A stretch of 8,880 nt of DNA, taken from contig JADGIF010000420.1 in the NCBI GenBank assembly GCA_018985225.1, positions 1 to 8,880 of the forward strand. Direction: 5' to 3'. Under the pieces are notes generated by a model. It was given only the letters and a program-made list of their open reading frames with translations. It was not told the origin of the DNA and ran no database searches. Source of the DNA: Amoeboradix gromovi X-113. Taxonomy: Eukaryota; Fungi; Sanchytriomycota. Below, piece after piece: positions 1,180 through 8,880 of the stretch. The stretch's first letter is position 1. Every line of letters starts with the position of its first letter. The translations under genes were made by a program, and so were the position numbers.

Positions 1180-1279
1180 GGGACATGCTCTGTAAAAACT
1201 AGACTAGGGGTAAAAAGTGGGTGACGAGATAAAGTCAATTGAAGTTTTTTCTCGACAATACTCTGTAAAAACTAGACTA
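1180..1279 (+). repeat. 100-bp left-end module, copy 1
   Basis: 94/100 identical to 2051-2150. Holds the 19-bp direct repeat CTCTGTAAAAACTAGACTA at 1188-1206 and 1261-1279, with an imperfect palindrome (1222-1257) between them. Confidence 0.95.
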
Positions 1280-1481
1280 TGAGTTGTTTCAGGTTTTTTA
1301 ATCTAATGATTGTTTTGTAATCCGTGTGCTGTAATAAATTTAATTTTCACCGTTGAATCAATAGTTGCCTTATGTCTATAGAACCAGAATGAATGAAAAA
1401 GCAAGGGAATAGATGTACAGGATATTTATTTTTGAAATTTCGATACAGATTGCGAAGTCTAGTTTTTATAGATCAGGTCCT
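1180..1481. mobile_element. Non-autonomous TIR element (MITE-like), about 300 bp
   Basis: 1181-1205 GGACATGCTCTGTAAAAACTAGACT matches the reverse complement of 1456-1480 (GGACCTGATCTATAAAAACTAGACT) at 22/25. No ORF inside. Flanks are ATAT and AATT, so no perfect target-site duplication (TSD). Confidence 0.72.
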
Positions 1482-1699
1482 AATTTGTAAACTACTTCAA
1501 TAATTGAAATTGACAAAAAAACAGGAAAATAGAAGTGGATCAGGCCACCCATCAATCTTGTTTATTTTGGACCATAGCCAGCACCCACTGCAGCTAGTCT
1601 TCAGCTCGAGGCACGATCAGTCTTATGGGTCTGATTTCTACCAGCGATTAGTCAAAATGTAATTCATGTTGGTCTTACTTTGACTTTTGAAACGTTGTT

Positions 1700-2095
1700 A
1701 TGGTGTTTTCAATTTTTGATATCACCGCTTTGGATCCTAAACTAGAAAGAGAAATTACAAAGCTAAAAGTATCTTATGGTAAACTATCGAAAAAATCTAA
1801 GCAAAAAAAGAAAAAAAAAGATAAATATAAATGTGGGGTATCGTTTTGTAGAGGTTTAAAGATCGCATTATGGGTTGTTTATATAGTTGGAAATTGGTTA
1901 CTTTATTTTTATCTAAGTGATAGTCGTCTTATTACTGCTATATTAAACACTGTTTGTGGTATTTTGGCATTTATAGAATTGGCCATTTTGGCATTTGTAA
2001 AAGCAAAATTAGAACCAGATTCAGAGTTAGAAATACAGATTTCAACATTAGGGACACGCTCTGTAAAAACTAGACTAGGGGTGAAAAGCGGGTGA
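1700..2095 (+). CDS. Two-transmembrane protein with Lys-rich N-terminal region, 3'-truncated by the repeat element
   Basis: 131-aa ORF with two hydrophobic segments (IALWVVYIVGNWLLYFYL; LITAILNTVCGILAFIELAILAFV). The last 14 aa (GTRSVKTRLGVKSG) and the TGA lie inside the module starting at 2051. Confidence 0.7.
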   Translation: MVFSIFDITALDPKLEREITKLKVSYGKLSKKSKQKKKKKDKYKCGVSFCRGLKIALWVVYIVGNWLLYFYLSDSRLITAILNTVCGILAFIELAILAFVKAKLEPDSELEIQISTLGTRSVKTRLGVKSG

Positions 2096-2150
2096 CGAGA
2101 TAAAGCCAATTGAAGTTTTTTCTCGACAATACTCTGTTAAAAGTAGACTA
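2051..2150 (+). repeat. 100-bp left-end module, copy 2
   Basis: Six substitutions versus 1180-1279. Similarity drops right after the second 19-bp repeat. Confidence 0.95.
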
Positions 2151-2240
2151 GATTGTTCTAAAATATAATCAGTTCGGCCATAGTATTTATACACATTCCA
2201 TATTAATAGGTAAGTGTTTTAGTGTAATTTGATATCATAT

Positions 2241-2462
2241 TTATTCACTATCATCGCTATCTTCTGCTGGTTCATTATTATATTCAAATTGAATAACCTG
2301 TTTTTGGAAATCACTTAAAGTCAAAGTCCATTGGAATGATCCCCCTCTAGGACAGACAATATTTAAAATGTTTTGATCCAATTCTATTTTCTCTTTTAAA
2401 TATAAATACACTTTTCGATAAATCTCAGCTCTTACAGGTTCGTCATCATTTTGACCAATCAA
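2241..2462 (-). CDS. Hypothetical protein, probably a 5'-truncated fragment with acidic tail
   Basis: 73 open codons, non-ATG start, acidic C-terminus PAEDSDDSE, AATAAA overlapping the stop. Confidence 0.45.
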   Translation of the reverse strand: MIGQNDDEPVRAEIYRKVYLYLKEKIELDQNILNIVCPRGGSFQWTLTLSDFQKQVIQFEYNNEPAEDSDDSE

Positions 2463-2537
2463 CTCGCAGGAAAAACTTGATTTGAATGGGACCTAAAACG
2501 TGTTAAAAATTGGTTTTCCAATAAAAGACGTAAATAA
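2414..2537 (+). pseudogene. Homeodomain relic
   Basis: 2460-2537 reads QLAGKT*FEWDLKRVKNWFSNKRRK*, with the helix-3 signature WFxNxR. 2414-2458 in another frame reads FDKSQLLQVRHHFDQ, matching helix-1 spacing F8/Q12/L13/F20. Confidence 0.6.
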
Positions 2538-2606
2538 TAAATGAAATTTGGCCATTCGATCAAATCTAAAATTTTTATTTAAAATAAAGTAATATCCTTG
2601 AATCAC

Positions 2607-2822
2607 ATGAGTATTTTATCATTTTTTTCCAAAAAACGTGAGGATAAAGAAATAAAAAGACAACAGGAAATAGATGAGCATAAAAGATACATTGCAAAGG
2701 TTTGCAACGATTTCTCTTTAGTACTTGAAGAAAAAAAACAAAAAGAACGATTGGAACGTGAAAAAATCTTTGGCATTAAAAGAAGTGGCATAAAAACAAT
2801 TCAAAGCGAAACACTTTATTAA
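2607..2822 (+). CDS. Small highly charged hypothetical protein (71 aa from ATG 2607)
   Basis: K/E/R-rich ORF; first ATG at 2607; AATAAA at 2822-2827 at the stop. Confidence 0.55.
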   Translation: MSILSFFSKKREDKEIKRQQEIDEHKRYIAKVCNDFSLVLEEKKQKERLEREKIFGIKRSGIKTIQSETLY

Positions 2823-2849
2823 ATAAAATCATTTATTTCAAAATATTTT

Positions 2850-3644
2850 ATGGAACTTTGGATTACCATCGTTTCATTTTTATTTTCTGCTCTTTCTATT
2901 TGTGTTACGGCGGGAATTGGTTGTTACATTTTTAAACGAGCACCTCGTTTAGCTTTTAATTACACAGATTATACTTCATTTTAAAAGAACGCTCTGATTC
3001 TTTTAAAGAGATAACTAATTGGTATAAAATAAAATTTAACGGCGAAACCCGCAAAACGTATTCTATTGGACTAGCTTTTTTAAATGAACTATCTTATTTA
3101 GTTGGAGGAGACGCCGAATTGTTTGAAATCTTTCAGCGTTCCGTTGGAGTTGCTCCTGTTTCTCCTTTGTGAAGATTGATAAATTTTCACCGATCAAATT
3201 GTAGACATTTCAATGATGAATGTGATGGAATTCTTGTTTCGATTGGTATTCATTTGAATGAAGATTCACTCATTGCTGTAGAAGCAACACCTCAAAATAA
3301 TACTACAGAAGAAACACATCAAATTAATACTACAGAAGCACAGACTCAAACCGATAGTACAGAAGTAGAAACTCAAGTTAAGACGAAAGCAAAATCTAAC
3401 CTTCGTAGTAATTTAATTAAAAGTTATCGCATTCGTACTATTATTTAATGTAGCAGAGGAAGAAATCAAAATATTGTTTTTAATTAAGAAGGATTTAGAA
3501 GAAAGAAATGGTAGAAAACCTCTTATAAATGAATTAACAAACTGTTTTGATAAAAAGATTGAAAGCAATAGTGCAAATTTTAATAGGGAAATTATACTTT
3601 TAGAAGAAGAAAATTATTTGCAACAATTGAATTTAAGGGGCTAA
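2850..3644 (+). pseudogene. Disrupted N-terminally membrane-anchored protein (about 265 codons)
   Basis: ATG 2850 starts MELWITIVSFLFSALSICVTAGIGCYIF (TM-like). Frameshift at about 2960-2982 into a frame open to TGA 3170, same frame continuing as ORF 3176-3448, second frameshift at about 3420 into a frame open 3417-3644. Confidence 0.6.
3272..3379 (+). repeat. Four degenerate 27-nt (9-aa) tandem coding repeats
   Basis: IAVEATPQN / NTTEETHQI / NTTEAQTQT / DSTEVETQV; E at position 4 and Q at position 8 in every unit. Confidence 0.8.
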
Positions 3645-3765
3645 TATAATTTCAGTTAAATAAAGTCTATTTGCGTAAAACATCAAAAGCGCTTTAAGCA
3701 CGGGAACGATAAAAATTATGAGATGCAAAGAAATGATGTTTATTAATTTAAGCATTTATTTTTTC

Positions 3766-3826
3766 TGGTCTCGATTTTACAGAGTAATATAGGTGAAACC
3801 AATCCTAGTCTCGTTTTCATAGTGCA
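3766..3826 (-). repeat. Diverged, inverted pair of the element's core motif (possible right end)
   Basis: Reverse complement of 3766-3788 matches 1257-1279 at 19/23; reverse complement of 3804-3826 matches 1186-1208 at 19/23. Motifs are 40 bp apart (73 bp in the left module). The terminal GGGACA is not conserved. Confidence 0.7.
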
Positions 3827-4023
3827 ACTTCAGAGTTGTGTTAAATAACGCATCATTTCAAGAACTGAGGTCTGATCATCATCAAACAAGGATTGAAAGA
3901 TACCCTTCGTTACCTTTATTCAAAATCATCATTTTTGTTTTTTCAAATTTTTTGAGATGGTCTATAAATCACAGAGTGCTTCCCACAACTTCATACTTTA
4001 CACGAAATTCTTGCGATAAATCA

Positions 4024-4557
4024 ATGACATATTTCAACATTTTAGTATCATACGAATCAATAGTATCTTACAAGTCAAATCAGATAATCATAATCGACGA
4101 GACGACGAATAAAATTCTTGCAGAAATGGGCGGCGCATATGATGAAATATATAGAAATATTGTAGACAAGACGTATAAGCCAATGCTTTCTATTAAAAAC
4201 AAAGCATCCGTACAACCCACAACTCTTGGTGGAAGTTTAGCTATAAACGTCAAGTATGAACAGATATTATTACATACTAAAAGAGAGGCATCAACGTATG
4301 TGTTCAAGTTATTAAACCCTTTGATAGAAAAAGTCAAAGCAAAATTGAGAGAACATCCTTCTCTTGAGATTAAATGGTATTATGATGCTATAAAAGAGAC
4401 TTCGGAATATCTGAACGAGACAGATGAATTTCAGTCAAAAGCACTTTGCTGTTTAAACCAAATATCTGACGAACTCCATAATACTTGTACATGTATAAAT
4501 GTCGGTCCTAAAATACAAAACTTTCTTGAAAATTTAAAGTATTGTAAAAAATGTTGA
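4024..4557 (+). CDS. Hypothetical protein (177 aa), Cys-rich C-terminus
   Basis: First ATG of the 3838-4557 ORF is at 4024. No family recognised. Confidence 0.7.
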   Translation: MTYFNILVSYESIVSYKSNQIIIIDETTNKILAEMGGAYDEIYRNIVDKTYKPMLSIKNKASVQPTTLGGSLAINVKYEQILLHTKREASTYVFKLLNPLIEKVKAKLREHPSLEIKWYYDAIKETSEYLNETDEFQSKALCCLNQISDELHNTCTCINVGPKIQNFLENLKYCKKC

Positions 4558-4735
4558 TAAGAAGAAAATTTCTGATTTATTTTTTGTTCCAGCTATATCA
4601 TCAGACGAACGCAACATTGTCTATAAGAACTATAGCGTGATATGTGCAGCGTATATTACATTTAACAAAGACTGATAAATTTTCAATAAACAAAATTTAT
4701 ACTAGAACAATAAGTAATTAATTAGACTAATTCTT

Positions 4736-5083
4736 CTATTGAACGATTTGAAAATTGAGATGAGTTTGACTTTCCTCATTGAATTCATTTATCTCTTCAA
4801 TGAATGCACCAGCAGCCTTGTAAAATGCAAATCGTTCTTTGGGTCTACTTATGTTGCTATCCAATATTTGATAATACTTTCGTATCAATTCTCTTTTATC
4901 CCTTGTTAATTGCAGATATACTGTCATTAATGATAGTGTAGTCTCTGAATATTTTTCAATCTTTAAATCATTCAATTCATCCATCTTTTTATCAGTTTCA
5001 AGATAAAATCCTGTTTGCGTCCATTTTTTATACTCTTCGTCCAATGTTAAGCTATTGAAAATAGTTAAAAAGAAGAAAAGCAT
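4736..5083 (-). CDS. Hypothetical helical protein with a signal-peptide-like N-terminus
   Basis: 115-aa ATG-started ORF: MLFFFLTIFNSLT, then charged amphipathic sequence. Confidence 0.6.
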   Translation of the reverse strand: MLFFFLTIFNSLTLDEEYKKWTQTGFYLETDKKMDELNDLKIEKYSETTLSLMTVYLQLTRDKRELIRKYYQILDSNISRPKERFAFYKAAGAFIEEINEFNEESQTHLNFQIVQ

Positions 5084-5099
5084 TTTAAAACACTGGAGA

Positions 5100-5540
5100 A
5101 TGACGAGTGTCTACGTGTTGAAATTAGAACAAGGTAAATACTACGTTGGCAAGACAAACAATATAGATAGGCGAATTGAAGAGCATTTCTCAAGTCAAGG
5201 ATGCGAATGGACTAGTTCGTATAAACCTATAGAAATTATCGAAACGGTTGAGAATGTAGATGATTTGTATGAGGATTTCATAGTTAAAAGATATATGAGA
5301 GACTTTGGAATCGATAATGTAAGAGGCGGTGCTTATGTTCAATTGGAACTGTCCTTTTCGAGTGAGTACTCTATTTTCAGAGAAATTGCTGCATCAAAAG
5401 ATGCTTGTATGCGATGTTTTAGAGTTGGTCATTTTATTGGAAGTTGTACTGCTAAAACGTATGCGAATGGTAAAAAAATAGTTGTTTGTTATCGGTGTGG
5501 ACAAGATGGTCACTACGCAGACGTATGTCAAGAATACTAG
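5100..5540 (+). CDS. GIY-YIG endonuclease with two C-terminal CCHC zinc knuckles
   Basis: VYVLKLEQGKYYVGKT, followed by RR..EH, a candidate catalytic Glu in YED and NVRGG. Two C-X2-C-X4-H-X4-C motifs (CMRCFRVGHFIGSC, CYRCGQDGHYADVC). ATG at 5100. Confidence 0.92.
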   Translation: MTSVYVLKLEQGKYYVGKTNNIDRRIEEHFSSQGCEWTSSYKPIEIIETVENVDDLYEDFIVKRYMRDFGIDNVRGGAYVQLELSFSSEYSIFREIAASKDACMRCFRVGHFIGSCTAKTYANGKKIVVCYRCGQDGHYADVCQEY

Positions 5541-5545
5541 AGTAA

Positions 5546-5805
5546 AATTTTGAAGATATTTTATGAATTGGCAAGCATTATGTCTTTATGTATAAATCTG
5601 AATATCCTGGTGTCGCGTATTATAAGAAATTGATTAATTATTCTGTAGAATTTAATACGCTAATGAAGATGATTTGAGTCAGAATAATAATTTATTTACT
5701 TCTGAATCGTTAAAACCATTGGAATTAAATGAAAGAAAGAAACATGATATCAGTCACTCATTGAGATATATTCCAGAAGAACATCATGCATTTTATGGTG
5801 TTTGA
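5546..5805 (+). pseudogene. C-terminal relic of a eukaryotic DNA-transposase-like protein (Sola/DUF7869-associated type)
   Basis: IGKHYVFMYKSEYPGVAYYKKLIN, frameshift at about 5660, then LKPLELNERKKHDISHSLRYIPEEHHAFYGV* followed by AATAAA. Family assignment is from recalled motifs (F.Y....PG....K and K..D....L.YIP..HH.FY), not from a search. Confidence 0.45.
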
Positions 5806-5944
5806 ATAAATAGTTATGTCTTAACCTTGTATTAATATTACCATTAGCAGAGTATAAATATCTAAATACCGCAGCTATTAACTATTCATCATCTTGCAAC
5901 CCAAAAGATGACCAGTTAATATTTGGAATTTCATTATTTTTCCA

Positions 5945-6181
5945 TTATCTTCCGCGGCTATTGTTATCAATTCTATCTTGACGTACATAATTAATAATAA
6001 CTGAAGAGATTCTAGTGAATTCTATTTCAGAAATTCCAAGATGACGCGAATAATCTTTTACATAAACTTCGATTAAAGGACAATGACGCCTTTGAATTTC
6101 TTCCATTTCATTTCCTTGTAGAAAATTTGCATACGCAGGAAAGCCCTGATAGTATAACATACCACCATTATGGTATTCCAT
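5945..6181 (-). CDS. Hypothetical protein; frame continues past the TAA
   Basis: 78-aa ATG-started ORF. Downstream the same frame reads WKNNEIPNINWSSFGLQDDE*LIAAVFRYLYSANGN. Confidence 0.5.
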   Translation of the reverse strand: MEYHNGGMLYYQGFPAYANFLQGNEMEEIQRRHCPLIEVYVKDYSRHLGISEIEFTRISSVIINYVRQDRIDNNSRGR

Positions 6182-6279
6182 TGATCTTATATTTTAATTT
6201 CTTTAGCCTTAATTGGCTCAAAACAATACGACTATGTCCAATTGGTCCAAGCATTTAAAAACAAGACCTCGCTATTGAT

Positions 6280-6657
6280 ATGGTAATTGGAAGTGCTGTT
6301 GGTGCTACAGGTTGGCCTGGCAATTTCTGTCAAACTGTATTCAATATATTTGCTGCTAACCCTAAATACGATTTAATTAAATTAGCTATCAATGATATTG
6401 AATTATGGCATTCTATAGCTCCCGAAGACTTTCTCAATGAAGAAATGATTGAAACGGTTACTGGTCAGAGATTGTTCGGAAGAAATGTAGTTAGATATCT
6501 CAAGTCTAAAGGTATCGGGCTTAACGATTGTTCAGAAGGACCTGTTAAAATAGGAAGTCTCTATATTGGACCTGTAAATATGTATAACTGTGGAAAAGTA
6601 TTCAACAACATAATATCACCGTACAATGATTTTACAGTTGCGAAGCCAATTGAATAA
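6280..6657 (+). pseudogene. C-terminal half of a GT32-like (Och1/Sur1-type) glycosyltransferase lacking the DXD region
   Basis: FCQTVFNIFAANPKYDLIKLAINDI...IETVTGQRLFGRNV resembles the GT32 pattern FAA.P.HP.L...I..I...TGP.LF. In-frame TAA at 6256 upstream; no DXD motif found. Confidence 0.55.
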
Positions 6658-6774
6658 ATGAAATTTCGTGAATACTTAAATTTAGATTGGTGCCAATTGT
6701 ATAGGGCAACGTAAATAAATCTTACTGACCTTTTGTATCTGGGGTTGCATTGATATAAAGTTTTTGAAACCTCG

Positions 6775-7515
6775 ATGCAAATGTTTTATCAAAGAAAAAA
6801 CGTAGCTTATAAATCTGCTATACTAGGTATACACCGCCATACTCTTTGGCCGGTCAAGAACTACCAGTCTGACTACCTGTTCGGTGATATTGTCTCAGGT
6901 CCAGCTTACCATTTACCCTGTATTGTTATAGTAAAAGTATTTCAGAACCTGTCTACGATACGGGATGACATTAAAAAAAAGATTGAGTCAAGAGCGTCTA
7001 AAAGCTGTCGGAAACGGGGTAGATGTGATGACTGTATTACTCTCTCGGAAGGAATCACTGATTGTCTTTACTTTGTACCAGAGCCCAATAACGATAATTC
7101 ACAGTCTTGGATACGTTTGACAGGGTTTCACCAAATACCTATAATTGAATGTGAAGAAATTTCAGGATTACAATCAAAACTTACCACACTGGCAAGTGCG
7201 TCCTCGAGGATTGTCGCTTTGAAGTTTATAAGAGAGTCAATTTGTTTCTATATTGGGCAACTAAGTAGTGATATTGGTAATATTTATACGAGTTCTATCG
7301 ACAGGGAGTTTCATTTTGCAATCTTAACACCTCCTATTTGGAACTATGGCAAGAATGTAAATTTAATGTTGAAGTTTAAGAATGAAATTATAAGACTAAG
7401 CCCTGTGTCTACCGTTTGGATCATATTTGAAAACTTGAATACTGAATTTAACACAACGAATGAATCTGTGGATCTGAATGTTTTAATGGATATGGTAAGC
7501 AATCAATTTCAATAA
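6775..7515 (+). CDS. Hypothetical protein (246 aa)
   Basis: Long ORF in AT-rich DNA, converging on the next gene with a 13-bp gap. No family recognised. Confidence 0.75.
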   Translation: MQMFYQRKNVAYKSAILGIHRHTLWPVKNYQSDYLFGDIVSGPAYHLPCIVIVKVFQNLSTIRDDIKKKIESRASKSCRKRGRCDDCITLSEGITDCLYFVPEPNNDNSQSWIRLTGFHQIPIIECEEISGLQSKLTTLASASSRIVALKFIRESICFYIGQLSSDIGNIYTSSIDREFHFAILTPPIWNYGKNVNLMLKFKNEIIRLSPVSTVWIIFENLNTEFNTTNESVDLNVLMDMVSNQFQ

Positions 7516-7528
7516 ACAAATTAATTTA

Positions 7529-8332
7529 CTAATCTAACGGTGTCTTAAATGTCCCATATAAAAGATCTACATGATCATTTGGTAAGTCTTTAAATTTTTT
7601 GTTGATAGTACTCAATATCTTACGAGTCTCGTCATATTTATCAACAAATTGAAAATATAATGGATGTCTAAAAGGTATTAACATCTCCAAAGTACTACAT
7701 TTAACTTCCGGCAAAATAACGCCAAGCCTAACAAGACCATCGTAATGATTTGTATCCTCTCTGTAAAGATATTCAATAACCTTTGATCTTTTCTCTTTGA
7801 GATGCTCAAATTGCTTTAAAGCCATATTATTAACAGATTTGAAAGTCAAAGTTGAATGACGAGAACCTCCGATGTACATGGTATCATCCCAATACATTCT
7901 CACATCTTTAGCTGTTGGGGATTTAAAAATAAATCTTTTGCACAACATTTTGGCATAAATAGCACACTTGTCAATATTGACATCAAGATTTGTATTAATC
8001 TCATCGTAATAAATCCCTGAACCACGACTACATACTTTCTTAACAACTAGGCGCCATTTATCAAGATTCTGAACAAGTTTAACCCAAATATTGAATTCGG
8101 TCAAATGCTTCATAATAAAAAATTCTTGGTAGTATTCCGGAAAAGTAGTTTCGGCTTTCCAGCCTTCAATAAACTCTTCTCGAGGTTCTACGTGAATAGA
8201 GAAAACAGGAACAGGATTGACATCAGAGAACTTTTTAATATCCATATCATTCCACAATTTGATTATTTCTGTAGCCGTGGGTATCATACTGACTGAAGAA
8301 AACTCTTTTTCAATTTGAAATTCATTTAACAT
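7529..8332 (-). CDS. Hypothetical protein (267 aa)
   Basis: Longest ORF, ATG start, natural composition. No family recognised. Confidence 0.8.
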   Translation of the reverse strand: MLNEFQIEKEFSSVSMIPTATEIIKLWNDMDIKKFSDVNPVPVFSIHVEPREEFIEGWKAETTFPEYYQEFFIMKHLTEFNIWVKLVQNLDKWRLVVKKVCSRGSGIYYDEINTNLDVNIDKCAIYAKMLCKRFIFKSPTAKDVRMYWDDTMYIGGSRHSTLTFKSVNNMALKQFEHLKEKRSKVIEYLYREDTNHYDGLVRLGVILPEVKCSTLEMLIPFRHPLYFQFVDKYDETRKILSTINKKFKDLPNDHVDLLYGTFKTPLD

Positions 8333-8596
8333 CTTTTGTTTTACAATGGGGCAGATTTTAATTTAAAAAATGTTACAAGCAAGATGAAGATTACAAGGAA
8401 ATAAATTATAATTTACTTAATAAATGCATCCCTGCTTAATCCGCCTCAGGGTAGTGGAAGTGTGGGCAACCATCGTAATAGAGCTAGCAATAGTTTTATG
8501 GTAGTTCTCGATTTTCTCGGAAATCGGGACTTTGAATGAGGAGCAGCGTCATAGTAATCACATTGAAATTAAATAAAATGTGATTTTATTAATAAC

Positions 8597-8866
8597 TTAA
8601 CTACTCATATATATTTCGCCAATTAATTTCAATCCTCTAGCTCTTCTTGCTAGTATAATTTCATCAACATTTGGTTCATACAAGACATCATCACAAACTT
8701 GTCTAAGGACATTTTGAACTTCTAACCTAGACCCTTTCCATATAGTTTCCATAGATTTTTGCGCCATTTCTGCCTGTAGTCTTCGACCCTCCTCTTCACT
8801 AGCTAAGGCTGTTTGTCCTTGTTCTACTTGTTGTAATTTAGCATGGCTTTTTTGCATATGGGACAT
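8597..8866 (-). pseudogene. C-terminal DnaJ-X domain fragment of a Djp1/Caj1-type J-protein, 5'-interrupted by the repeat element
   Basis: METIWKGSRLEVQNVLRQVCDDVL...LARRARGLKLIGEIY fits the DnaJ-X end pattern (W....E....LR.VC..VL...RA..L..IG..Y). No J-domain/HPD in the window. The ATG lies inside the element. Confidence 0.8.
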
Positions 8867-8880
8867 GCTCTGTAAAAAGT
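8860..8880 (+). repeat. Left-end module, copy 3 (cut by window edge)
   Basis: GGGACATGCTCTGTAAAAAGT matches 1180-1200 at 20/21; preceded by ATAT as in copy 1. Confidence 0.9.

Follow-up and report, generated by a model that had tools for sequence, protein, structure and literature searches.

A transposon end module of Amoeboradix gromovi and its family of asymmetric, Sola-like elements with variable interiors

Background

The Sola superfamily was reportedly first described by Bao et al. in 2009. In Ac/Ds, En/Spm and Pack-MULEs, binding sites are repeated in the subterminal regions and gene-carrying derivatives occur. Sola1 MITEs combine GGAC-type termini with an AWWT target and a 4-bp duplication, a pattern that has been called a Sola1 hallmark (PMC3845634). 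In the Sola2-Fanzor1 chimeras of Dictyostelium fasciculatum and Polysphondylium pallidum, one end is nearly identical from copy to copy and the rest of the element varies (Bao and Jurka 2013, PMC3627910). A survey of fungi recorded Sola1 only in Rhizophagus and in single cases in Dikarya (PMC5751038), and the genome paper on the lineage studied here, which presents a 10.5-Mb SPAdes assembly, contains neither 'transpos...' nor 'repeat' as words (PMC8371127). Records of Sola-type elements in fungi are rare.

Amoeboradix gromovi is a small fungus that parasitizes algae. The stretch of DNA analyzed here (the window) is an entire contig of 8,880 nucleotides (C681) from its short-read assembly, which comprises 10.55 Mb in 1319 contigs. 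A sequence-only reading of this window had proposed a cargo-capturing, non-autonomous transposon family with a fixed end module. We conclude, at a probability of roughly 80%, that the module is one end (the A-end) of a family of cut-and-paste, terminal-inverted-repeat DNA transposons in this AT-rich fungal genome. The family is real, and it is a fairly ordinary mobile element of a known general type.

End modules in the window and the genome

The terminus GGGACAYGCTCTGTAAAAA is found at positions 1180, 2051 and 8860 of the window, each time on the plus strand, in agreement with the claim of three left ends in the same orientation. The 94% identity given for the two complete 100-nt modules was reproduced (1180-1279 compared with 2051-2150). 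These modules were also said to diverge directly after the second motif; they do diverge, but conservation first continues for about 12 nt (GGAGTTGTTTCA), so that the module is ~115 nt rather than 100 nt in length. A 19-nt motif has six matches in the window (≤3 mismatches) as against 0 in 200 shuffles, and two of its copies, at 1188-1206 and 1261-1279, lie in the A-end of copy 1. The inverted motif copy reported at 1456-1480 was recovered as an inverted arm of 25 nt that is 88% complementary to 1181-1205, and the flanks ATAT, ATTA, ATAT and AATT read as claimed. The two inverted motifs reported within 3766-3826 proved to be weaker: one motif-like site departs from the motif at 3 of 19 nt, the other lies above the 3-mismatch limit and matches at ~82% by BLAST, and both are at the edge of a separate repeat.

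In the 10.5-Mb assembly, the 19-nt terminus has 241 matches (≤2 mismatches), compared with a single match for the reversed control. Among the 90 exact matches listed, 34 are situated at most 270 bp from the start of a contig and face it. This crowding of termini at contig starts indicates that the repeat breaks the short-read assembly, and a described family would account for many of its contig breaks. The A-end spacer is far less common, with only seven matches in the genome (≤3 mismatches), two of them in the window; likewise, there are only ~7 copies of the full 100-bp module genome-wide, again with two in the window. The terminus had no matches in viral contigs, and in metagenomes it had only two chance matches, in GC-rich contexts and with identity ending after 20 nt.

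When 47 termini were sorted by the sequence beyond their first 26 nt, three end types with a common 26-bp repeat (GGGACATGCTCTGTAAAAACTAGACT) were distinguished. The A-end consists of the 26-bp terminal repeat, a 45-nt spacer, a second 19-nt core and then GGAGTTGTTTCA; an alignment of 10 A-ends shows high conservation over ~115 nt and divergence beyond. The B-end contains the same second motif preceded by a different spacer of ~135 nt, and it is ~190-240 bp in length as against ~115 bp for the A-end. In both types the 19-nt core is repeated once further in, in direct orientation, and the spacers differ. The ends had been described as asymmetric with iterated sites. The asymmetry was confirmed, and the iteration amounts to one terminal and one subterminal 19-nt motif per end. 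We infer that these motifs are putative transposase-binding sites.

In the third end type, the first 69 nt of an A-end run into an inverted terminus, and the two together make up a hairpin-like unit of 88 nt, behind which lie ATAT and the 3' end of a Fanzor1-like gene (a 42-aa C-terminal relic ORF with a DRDGNA motif). A first look at the genome gave 1328 candidates for a related mini-element, and the outer 69 nt of the A-end form the outermost end of ~1000 mini-elements with a Fanzor1 relic. RNA folding of the A-end is not significant (z = -0.06 to -1.6). Only the 88-nt mini version folds well, which is a trivial result of its inverted ends.

A further type of terminal repeat, GGGACCTGATCTGACAAAATGTCCC, was observed at positions 93 and 4656 of L037 and at position 7665 of L045, with the same flank pattern. 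On C542, an end of this type may pair with an A-end to give a 4248-bp unit flanked by ATAT and AAAT.

Long elements and their passenger genes

Several longer relatives carry genes between their ends. The element on C689 (L031, 2020-5991) is 3972 bp in length; its 26-bp repeats are perfect, and AGAT flanks it on either side. Inside it are a relic of a resolvase-type TnpA, a TnpB/Fanzor2-like relic that is part of a nested IS607-type unit, and two more ORFs. The element on C367 (5157 bp, ATAT on both sides) contains two ORFs of 570 and 634 aa that are unrelated to each other; the inverted termini of these two elements are perfect over 26-28 bp. The A-end on C567 precedes a 573-aa ORF, behind which lies the gene of the 570-aa ORF, split in two pieces. 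The 6334-bp element on C781 contains the same gene as the 570-aa ORF of C367. In an all-against-all BLAST comparison, the only parts common to the long elements were the A-end, a transposase gene of ~1.8 kb and the B-end. The 634-aa passenger ORF of the 5157-bp element (L035, 3723-5627) has no Pfam match.

Two matched ends around foreign DNA are found on C689, C367, C567 and C781. The earlier claim that the ends enclose unrelated DNA is therefore valid for the family, but not for the copies in the window. The idea of a purely non-autonomous family had to be given up because copies with a transposase gene exist. A description of the family would reveal what carries passenger genes from place to place in this very small genome.

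The DUF7869 protein

The gene common to the long elements matches the Pfam family DUF7869 above the cut-off (E-value: 1e-19 to 1e-22). The search for an autonomous copy that the sequence-only reading had recommended yielded transposase-bearing copies and a total of 29 DUF7869 loci in the genome, with open frames of up to 687 aa (687 aa on C556, 586 aa on C915); no such loci were found in 14 control genomes. The protein is ~570-690 aa in length, and its paralogues conserve the acidic motifs SFD[FY]SQN, ADNCxGQNKN and GHTKFSPDS. In the open copy on C367, the last of these reads GNTKFSPYS instead. Four transposase copies were read, and none of them combines an open frame with a complete set of motifs; those other than the C367 copy are broken.

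Feature-based neighbors of the protein in the Atlas are eukaryotic DUF7869 clusters, mostly from arthropods and molluscs, and one of the DUF7869 clusters partly carries a DDE_Tnp_ISAZ013 domain. A search of the PDB gave no sequence relative of the protein, and no close relatives of either the transposase or the 267-aa passenger protein (see below) were found in viral contigs. The DUF7869 protein is the putative catalytic transposase of the family.

Target site and duplications

Two junctions and the flanks of a third element were informative with respect to the target. On C689, removal of the element and one AGAT joins a paralogous transposase gene, and tblastx alignments with three paralogues of that gene cross the rejoined site without gaps. 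A GST-like ORF on C781 becomes continuous across the junction with a removal of 4 bp, and no other removal between 0 and 6 bp has this effect; the two flank copies differ at one base. On C367, the flanks are ATAT and ATAT. A flank logo built from 66 termini, as had been suggested, gave a C-AWWT-G pattern: C at -5 (68%), A at -4 (77%), T at -3 (62%; T or A, 85%), A or T at -2 (77%) and T at -1 (86%), on a background of ~17.5% for C or G and 32% for A or T. The exact sequence AWWT is present at 28 of the 66 termini, with ATAT the commonest form, and the pattern is equal for A/B ends and for mini-element ends. Together, the logo and the junctions point to a C-AWWT-G target of which the middle four bases are duplicated. 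The target had been predicted to be 4 bp in length and AT-only. The length is correct and the site is AT-rich (ANNT/AWWT).

The check for target site duplications had a mixed outcome, with AGAT on C689, ATAT on C367 and the restored frame on C781 on one side, but a chance-level result for short pairs on the other. Among 15 nearest-neighbor end pairs, most of them short MITEs, two have identical 4-bp flanks, which is no better than shuffled pairs, and four have flanks with at most one mismatch. Possible reasons for this poor matching are age, ectopic exchange among copies or a different mode of spread.

As a separate observation, the short mini-elements (15 end pairs) have ANNT on both sides, and the two sides rarely match each other. 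Their flank matches are fewer than the simple decay of a true duplication predicts.

Proposed mechanism

A complete element consists of an A-end, an interior and a B-end, and autonomous-type copies encode the DUF7869 protein of ~570-690 aa, which in the mechanism that we propose is their transposase. Elements would insert at C-AWWT-G-like sites, with duplication of the central 4 bp. Internal deletion and replacement would then give rise to three kinds of derivatives: minimal two-end MITEs, such as that at 1180-1481 of the window; elements in which the interior is replaced by unrelated passenger DNA; and mini-elements, present in very large numbers, in which the first 69 nt of the A-end recur beside a Fanzor1 gene relic. 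For copy 2 of the window there are two readings: a solo end, or the left end of an element that was rich in cargo and has decayed.

Copies in the window

Copy 1 (1180-1481, plus strand) is a complete, non-coding MITE of 302 bp that consists only of an A-end and an inverted B-end, as determined from BLAST matches to the end modules and from its inverted arms. Its A-end module (1180-1294, plus strand) has the terminal repeat, the spacer and the second motif followed by GAGTTGTTTCA, based on the alignment of 10 A-ends, and bp 1180-1291 are 95-96% identical to the A-ends of other loci by BLAST. Its B-end module (1306-1481, minus strand) is 77-88% identical to B-ends at 15 other loci, and BLAST gives 79% identity over 176 nt between 1306-1480 and the B-end module. 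The B-side terminal repeat is degenerate, with 4 of 26 positions mismatched and the final C changed to T; the inverted termini of the copy match at 22 of 26 positions. Only ~11 nt between the two modules are unassigned (1295-1305). The left flank ATAT (1176-1179) is a candidate target duplication, and the right flank AATT (1482-1485) differs from it at two of four positions.

Copy 1 is a MITE by definition, being short, non-coding and built from the ends of transposase-bearing elements, although its flanks (ATAT vs AATT) are not a matching target duplication. The reading of the family as a cargo-capturing transposon rather than a uniform MITE does not hold for this copy, a plain 302-bp MITE with both ends and without cargo. 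With a B-end at 79% identity and a degenerate terminal repeat, copy 1 is old.

Copy 2 (2051-2163, plus strand) is an A-end only. It has ATTA as its flank, interrupts an ORF at 1700-2095, and the DNA behind it is single-copy: 2152-3754 has no second copy in the genome. No B-end or other terminus that could partner it was found in the window, so two matched ends enclosing foreign DNA are not seen at this copy, and the cargo element proposed here has no right end in the window. The site at 3766-3826 was considered as its partner end and rejected because it is the edge of another repeat. The sequence-only reading had also called for empty sites, and for copies 1 and 2 no empty-site allele or paralogue is present in the assembly, in which their flanks are single-copy.

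Copy 3 (8860-8880, plus strand) is a terminus only, 21 nt in length and cut off by the end of the contig; every end type shares this sequence. The copy adjoins a fragment of a DnaJ-X gene. Fanzor1 sequence was not found within any of the window copies.

The DnaJ-X fragment (8597-8866, minus strand) is open over 89 codons and stops exactly at the terminus at 8860. It matches the DnaJ-X Pfam profile (E-value: 6e-19) at profile positions 102-184 only. A full paralogue with 74% nucleotide identity is present on C756, and the missing N-terminal half of the window gene was not found in the assembly.

The region between copies 2 and 3

Several pieces of the window between 2164 and 8400 recur beside the transposase at other loci. 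The separate repeat noted above lies at 3755-3985 (plus strand); it is ~230 bp in length with ~9 copies, and two inverted and diverged motif copies (3766-3784 and 3804-3826) lie within its first 72 nt. The contigs C558, C475, C811 and C367 each contain a copy of this repeat and a DUF7869 locus, and C558 contains the repeat as an inverted pair. At 5546-5812 (plus strand) there is a C-terminal relic of the DUF7869 transposase, identified by tblastn with the tail of the L031 protein (57% identity over 56 aa, E-value: 6e-17). Only its last ~90 codons remain, and the DNA has matches in at least 12 other contigs. The adjoining segment (5818-6164, plus strand), with a 78-aa ORF at 5945-6181 on the minus strand, is 84% identical over 347 nt to C781, where its counterpart lies in the 6.3-kb element, close behind the end on the A-side. 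Finally, a convergent two-gene cassette at 6775-8332 consists of a 246-aa ORF on the plus strand (6775-7515) and a 267-aa ORF on the minus strand (7529-8332). The cassette has no Pfam match but is homologous to part of the C689 cargo (L031, 4077-5687; BLASTP: 32% identity over 180 aa, E-value: 3e-26). The 267-aa family has four open members in the genome, each of which either neighbors a transposase locus or relic or lies within an element. The recurrence of these pieces by transposase elsewhere suggests that the pieces within 2164-8400 derive from decayed cargo-rich elements.

Three other features of the region were recorded. Three tandem 27-nt units (70-89% identity) at 3280-3360 lie in an ORF at 3176-3448 and encode a Thr/Gln/Glu-rich repeat. 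An ORF at 5100-5540 (plus strand) encodes a GIY-YIG nuclease domain and, behind it, CCHC zinc knuckles; parts of this gene, too, recur beside the transposase elsewhere, and partial DNA copies are present on C578, C466 and C106. A different high-copy repeat is situated at 8421-8546, with 124 first-look candidates in the genome and 72-80% identity to copies in 12 of the loci examined.

It is possible, at somewhat less than even odds, that copy 2 is the left end of one large cargo element that spanned much of 2051-8400 and has since decayed, its right end being lost or beyond the contig. The transposase relic (5546-5812), the adjoining segment (5818-6164) and the two-gene cassette (6775-8332) are all contained in this stretch, as is the repeat at 3755-3985, which is found near transposase loci elsewhere; in addition, the GC content is 0.29-0.31 over ~2000-6000 as against ~0.35 in 1-1500 and 6000-7500. 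However, there is no correctly oriented B-end or terminus within 2164-8859, and the terminus at 8860 has the wrong orientation for closing such an element. Moreover, 2152-3754 and 6165-8400 are single-copy at the DNA level, and the transposase relic is limited to the last ~90 codons.

Classification and alternative explanations

The family has terminal inverted repeats and, in its long elements, a 4-bp duplication, both of which are characteristic of Sola, and its 66 termini show the AWWT target preference of the Sola1 group. The suggested link with Sola fits in this respect, since the preference agrees both with Sola1 (PMC3845634) and with the Sola2-Fanzor chimeras (PMC3627910). On target, termini and size, the best fit would be that the family belongs to the Sola superfamily, nearest to Sola1 by its target site.

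It is unlikely, if still worth weighing, that this is a 4-bp-duplicating family outside Sola, with DUF7869 marking either a distinct, undescribed superfamily or a sister of the bacterial ISAZ013-like elements. The only Pfam family matched is a domain of unknown function and Pfam is without a Sola model, one Atlas cluster mixes DUF7869 with DDE_Tnp_ISAZ013, and the motifs of the protein differ, by eye, from the Sola2 sequence in the supplement of PMC3627910. Against this, the 4-bp AWWT target and GGAC-type termini are as in published Sola1 MITEs (PMC3845634), and the lengths of 5-6 kb agree with curated Sola1 elements (PMC10294476). The other families with 4-bp duplications that were considered (piggyBac, Kolobok and Ginger) have Pfam domains or TTAA/TATA targets, which are unseen here.

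A bolder proposal concerns the mini-elements. The end of the transposon might co-evolve as one unit with the end of a Fanzor1 guide RNA, with C-AWWT-G doubling as a target-adjacent motif and with copying triggered by the nuclease. We consider this very improbable. If it were true, the poorly matched flanks of short copies would mean that many of these copies arose by nuclease-triggered copying and not by staggered cuts made by a transposase.

The interpretation of these repeats as a dispersed regulatory or structural module or as intron-generating introner elements, prompted by a minus strand that reads TTTTTACAG at the terminus, like a 3' splice site, and by the open DnaJ-X frame beside copy 3, is ruled out by inverted ends, an encoded transposase, element sizes of 300-6300 bp and insertions that disrupt genes, the frame of which returns only after removal of the element and 4 bp.

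Comparison with known systems

As a cut-and-paste transposon family, the elements described here alter nothing in the mode of action already known for transposons. The new findings are how the A-end and the B-end are built, the numbers of copies, the C-AWWT-G logo and the chance-level result for end pairs.

Similarly to Ac/Ds, En/Spm and Pack-MULEs, the elements have direct motif repeats in their ends, subterminal regions that differ between left and right, and interiors that have been replaced. They differ from these systems in having only two motif copies per end, for which binding is putative, and in carrying passengers that are whole ORFs or nested elements and cannot be shown to be pieces of host genes.

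With the Sola2-Fanzor1 chimeras (PMC3627910), the family shares an end region that is nearly identical among copies with an unrelated remainder, AT-rich 4-bp duplications (AWWT; ATAT, AAAT, ATTT), an association with Fanzor1 and the existence of transposase-deleted derivatives. The Sola2-Fanzor1 elements are 10-15 kb in length, with 12-22-bp repeats and a transposase of ~888 aa; in contrast, the elements here are 0.3-6.3 kb in length, with 26-bp repeats and a transposase of ~570-690 aa. Furthermore, Fanzor1 is represented here only by a short C-terminal relic in the sampled mini-elements, which borrow 69 nt of the A-end.

Compared with the Sola1 MITEs of silkworm and Rhodnius (PMC3845634), the family has a sanchytrid fungus as its host, an extra C/G on each side of the target (CAWWTG), asymmetric ends with a second motif copy, and many copies with passenger genes. 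The likeness to Sola1, drawn from target, termini and size and not from a comparison of transposases, extends to the 4-bp duplication with an AWWT/AWDT preference, to terminal repeats of ~28-36 bp that start with GGAC, and to the coexistence of MITEs (~250-700 bp) with autonomous elements that measure a few kb and have a transposase of ~600 aa.
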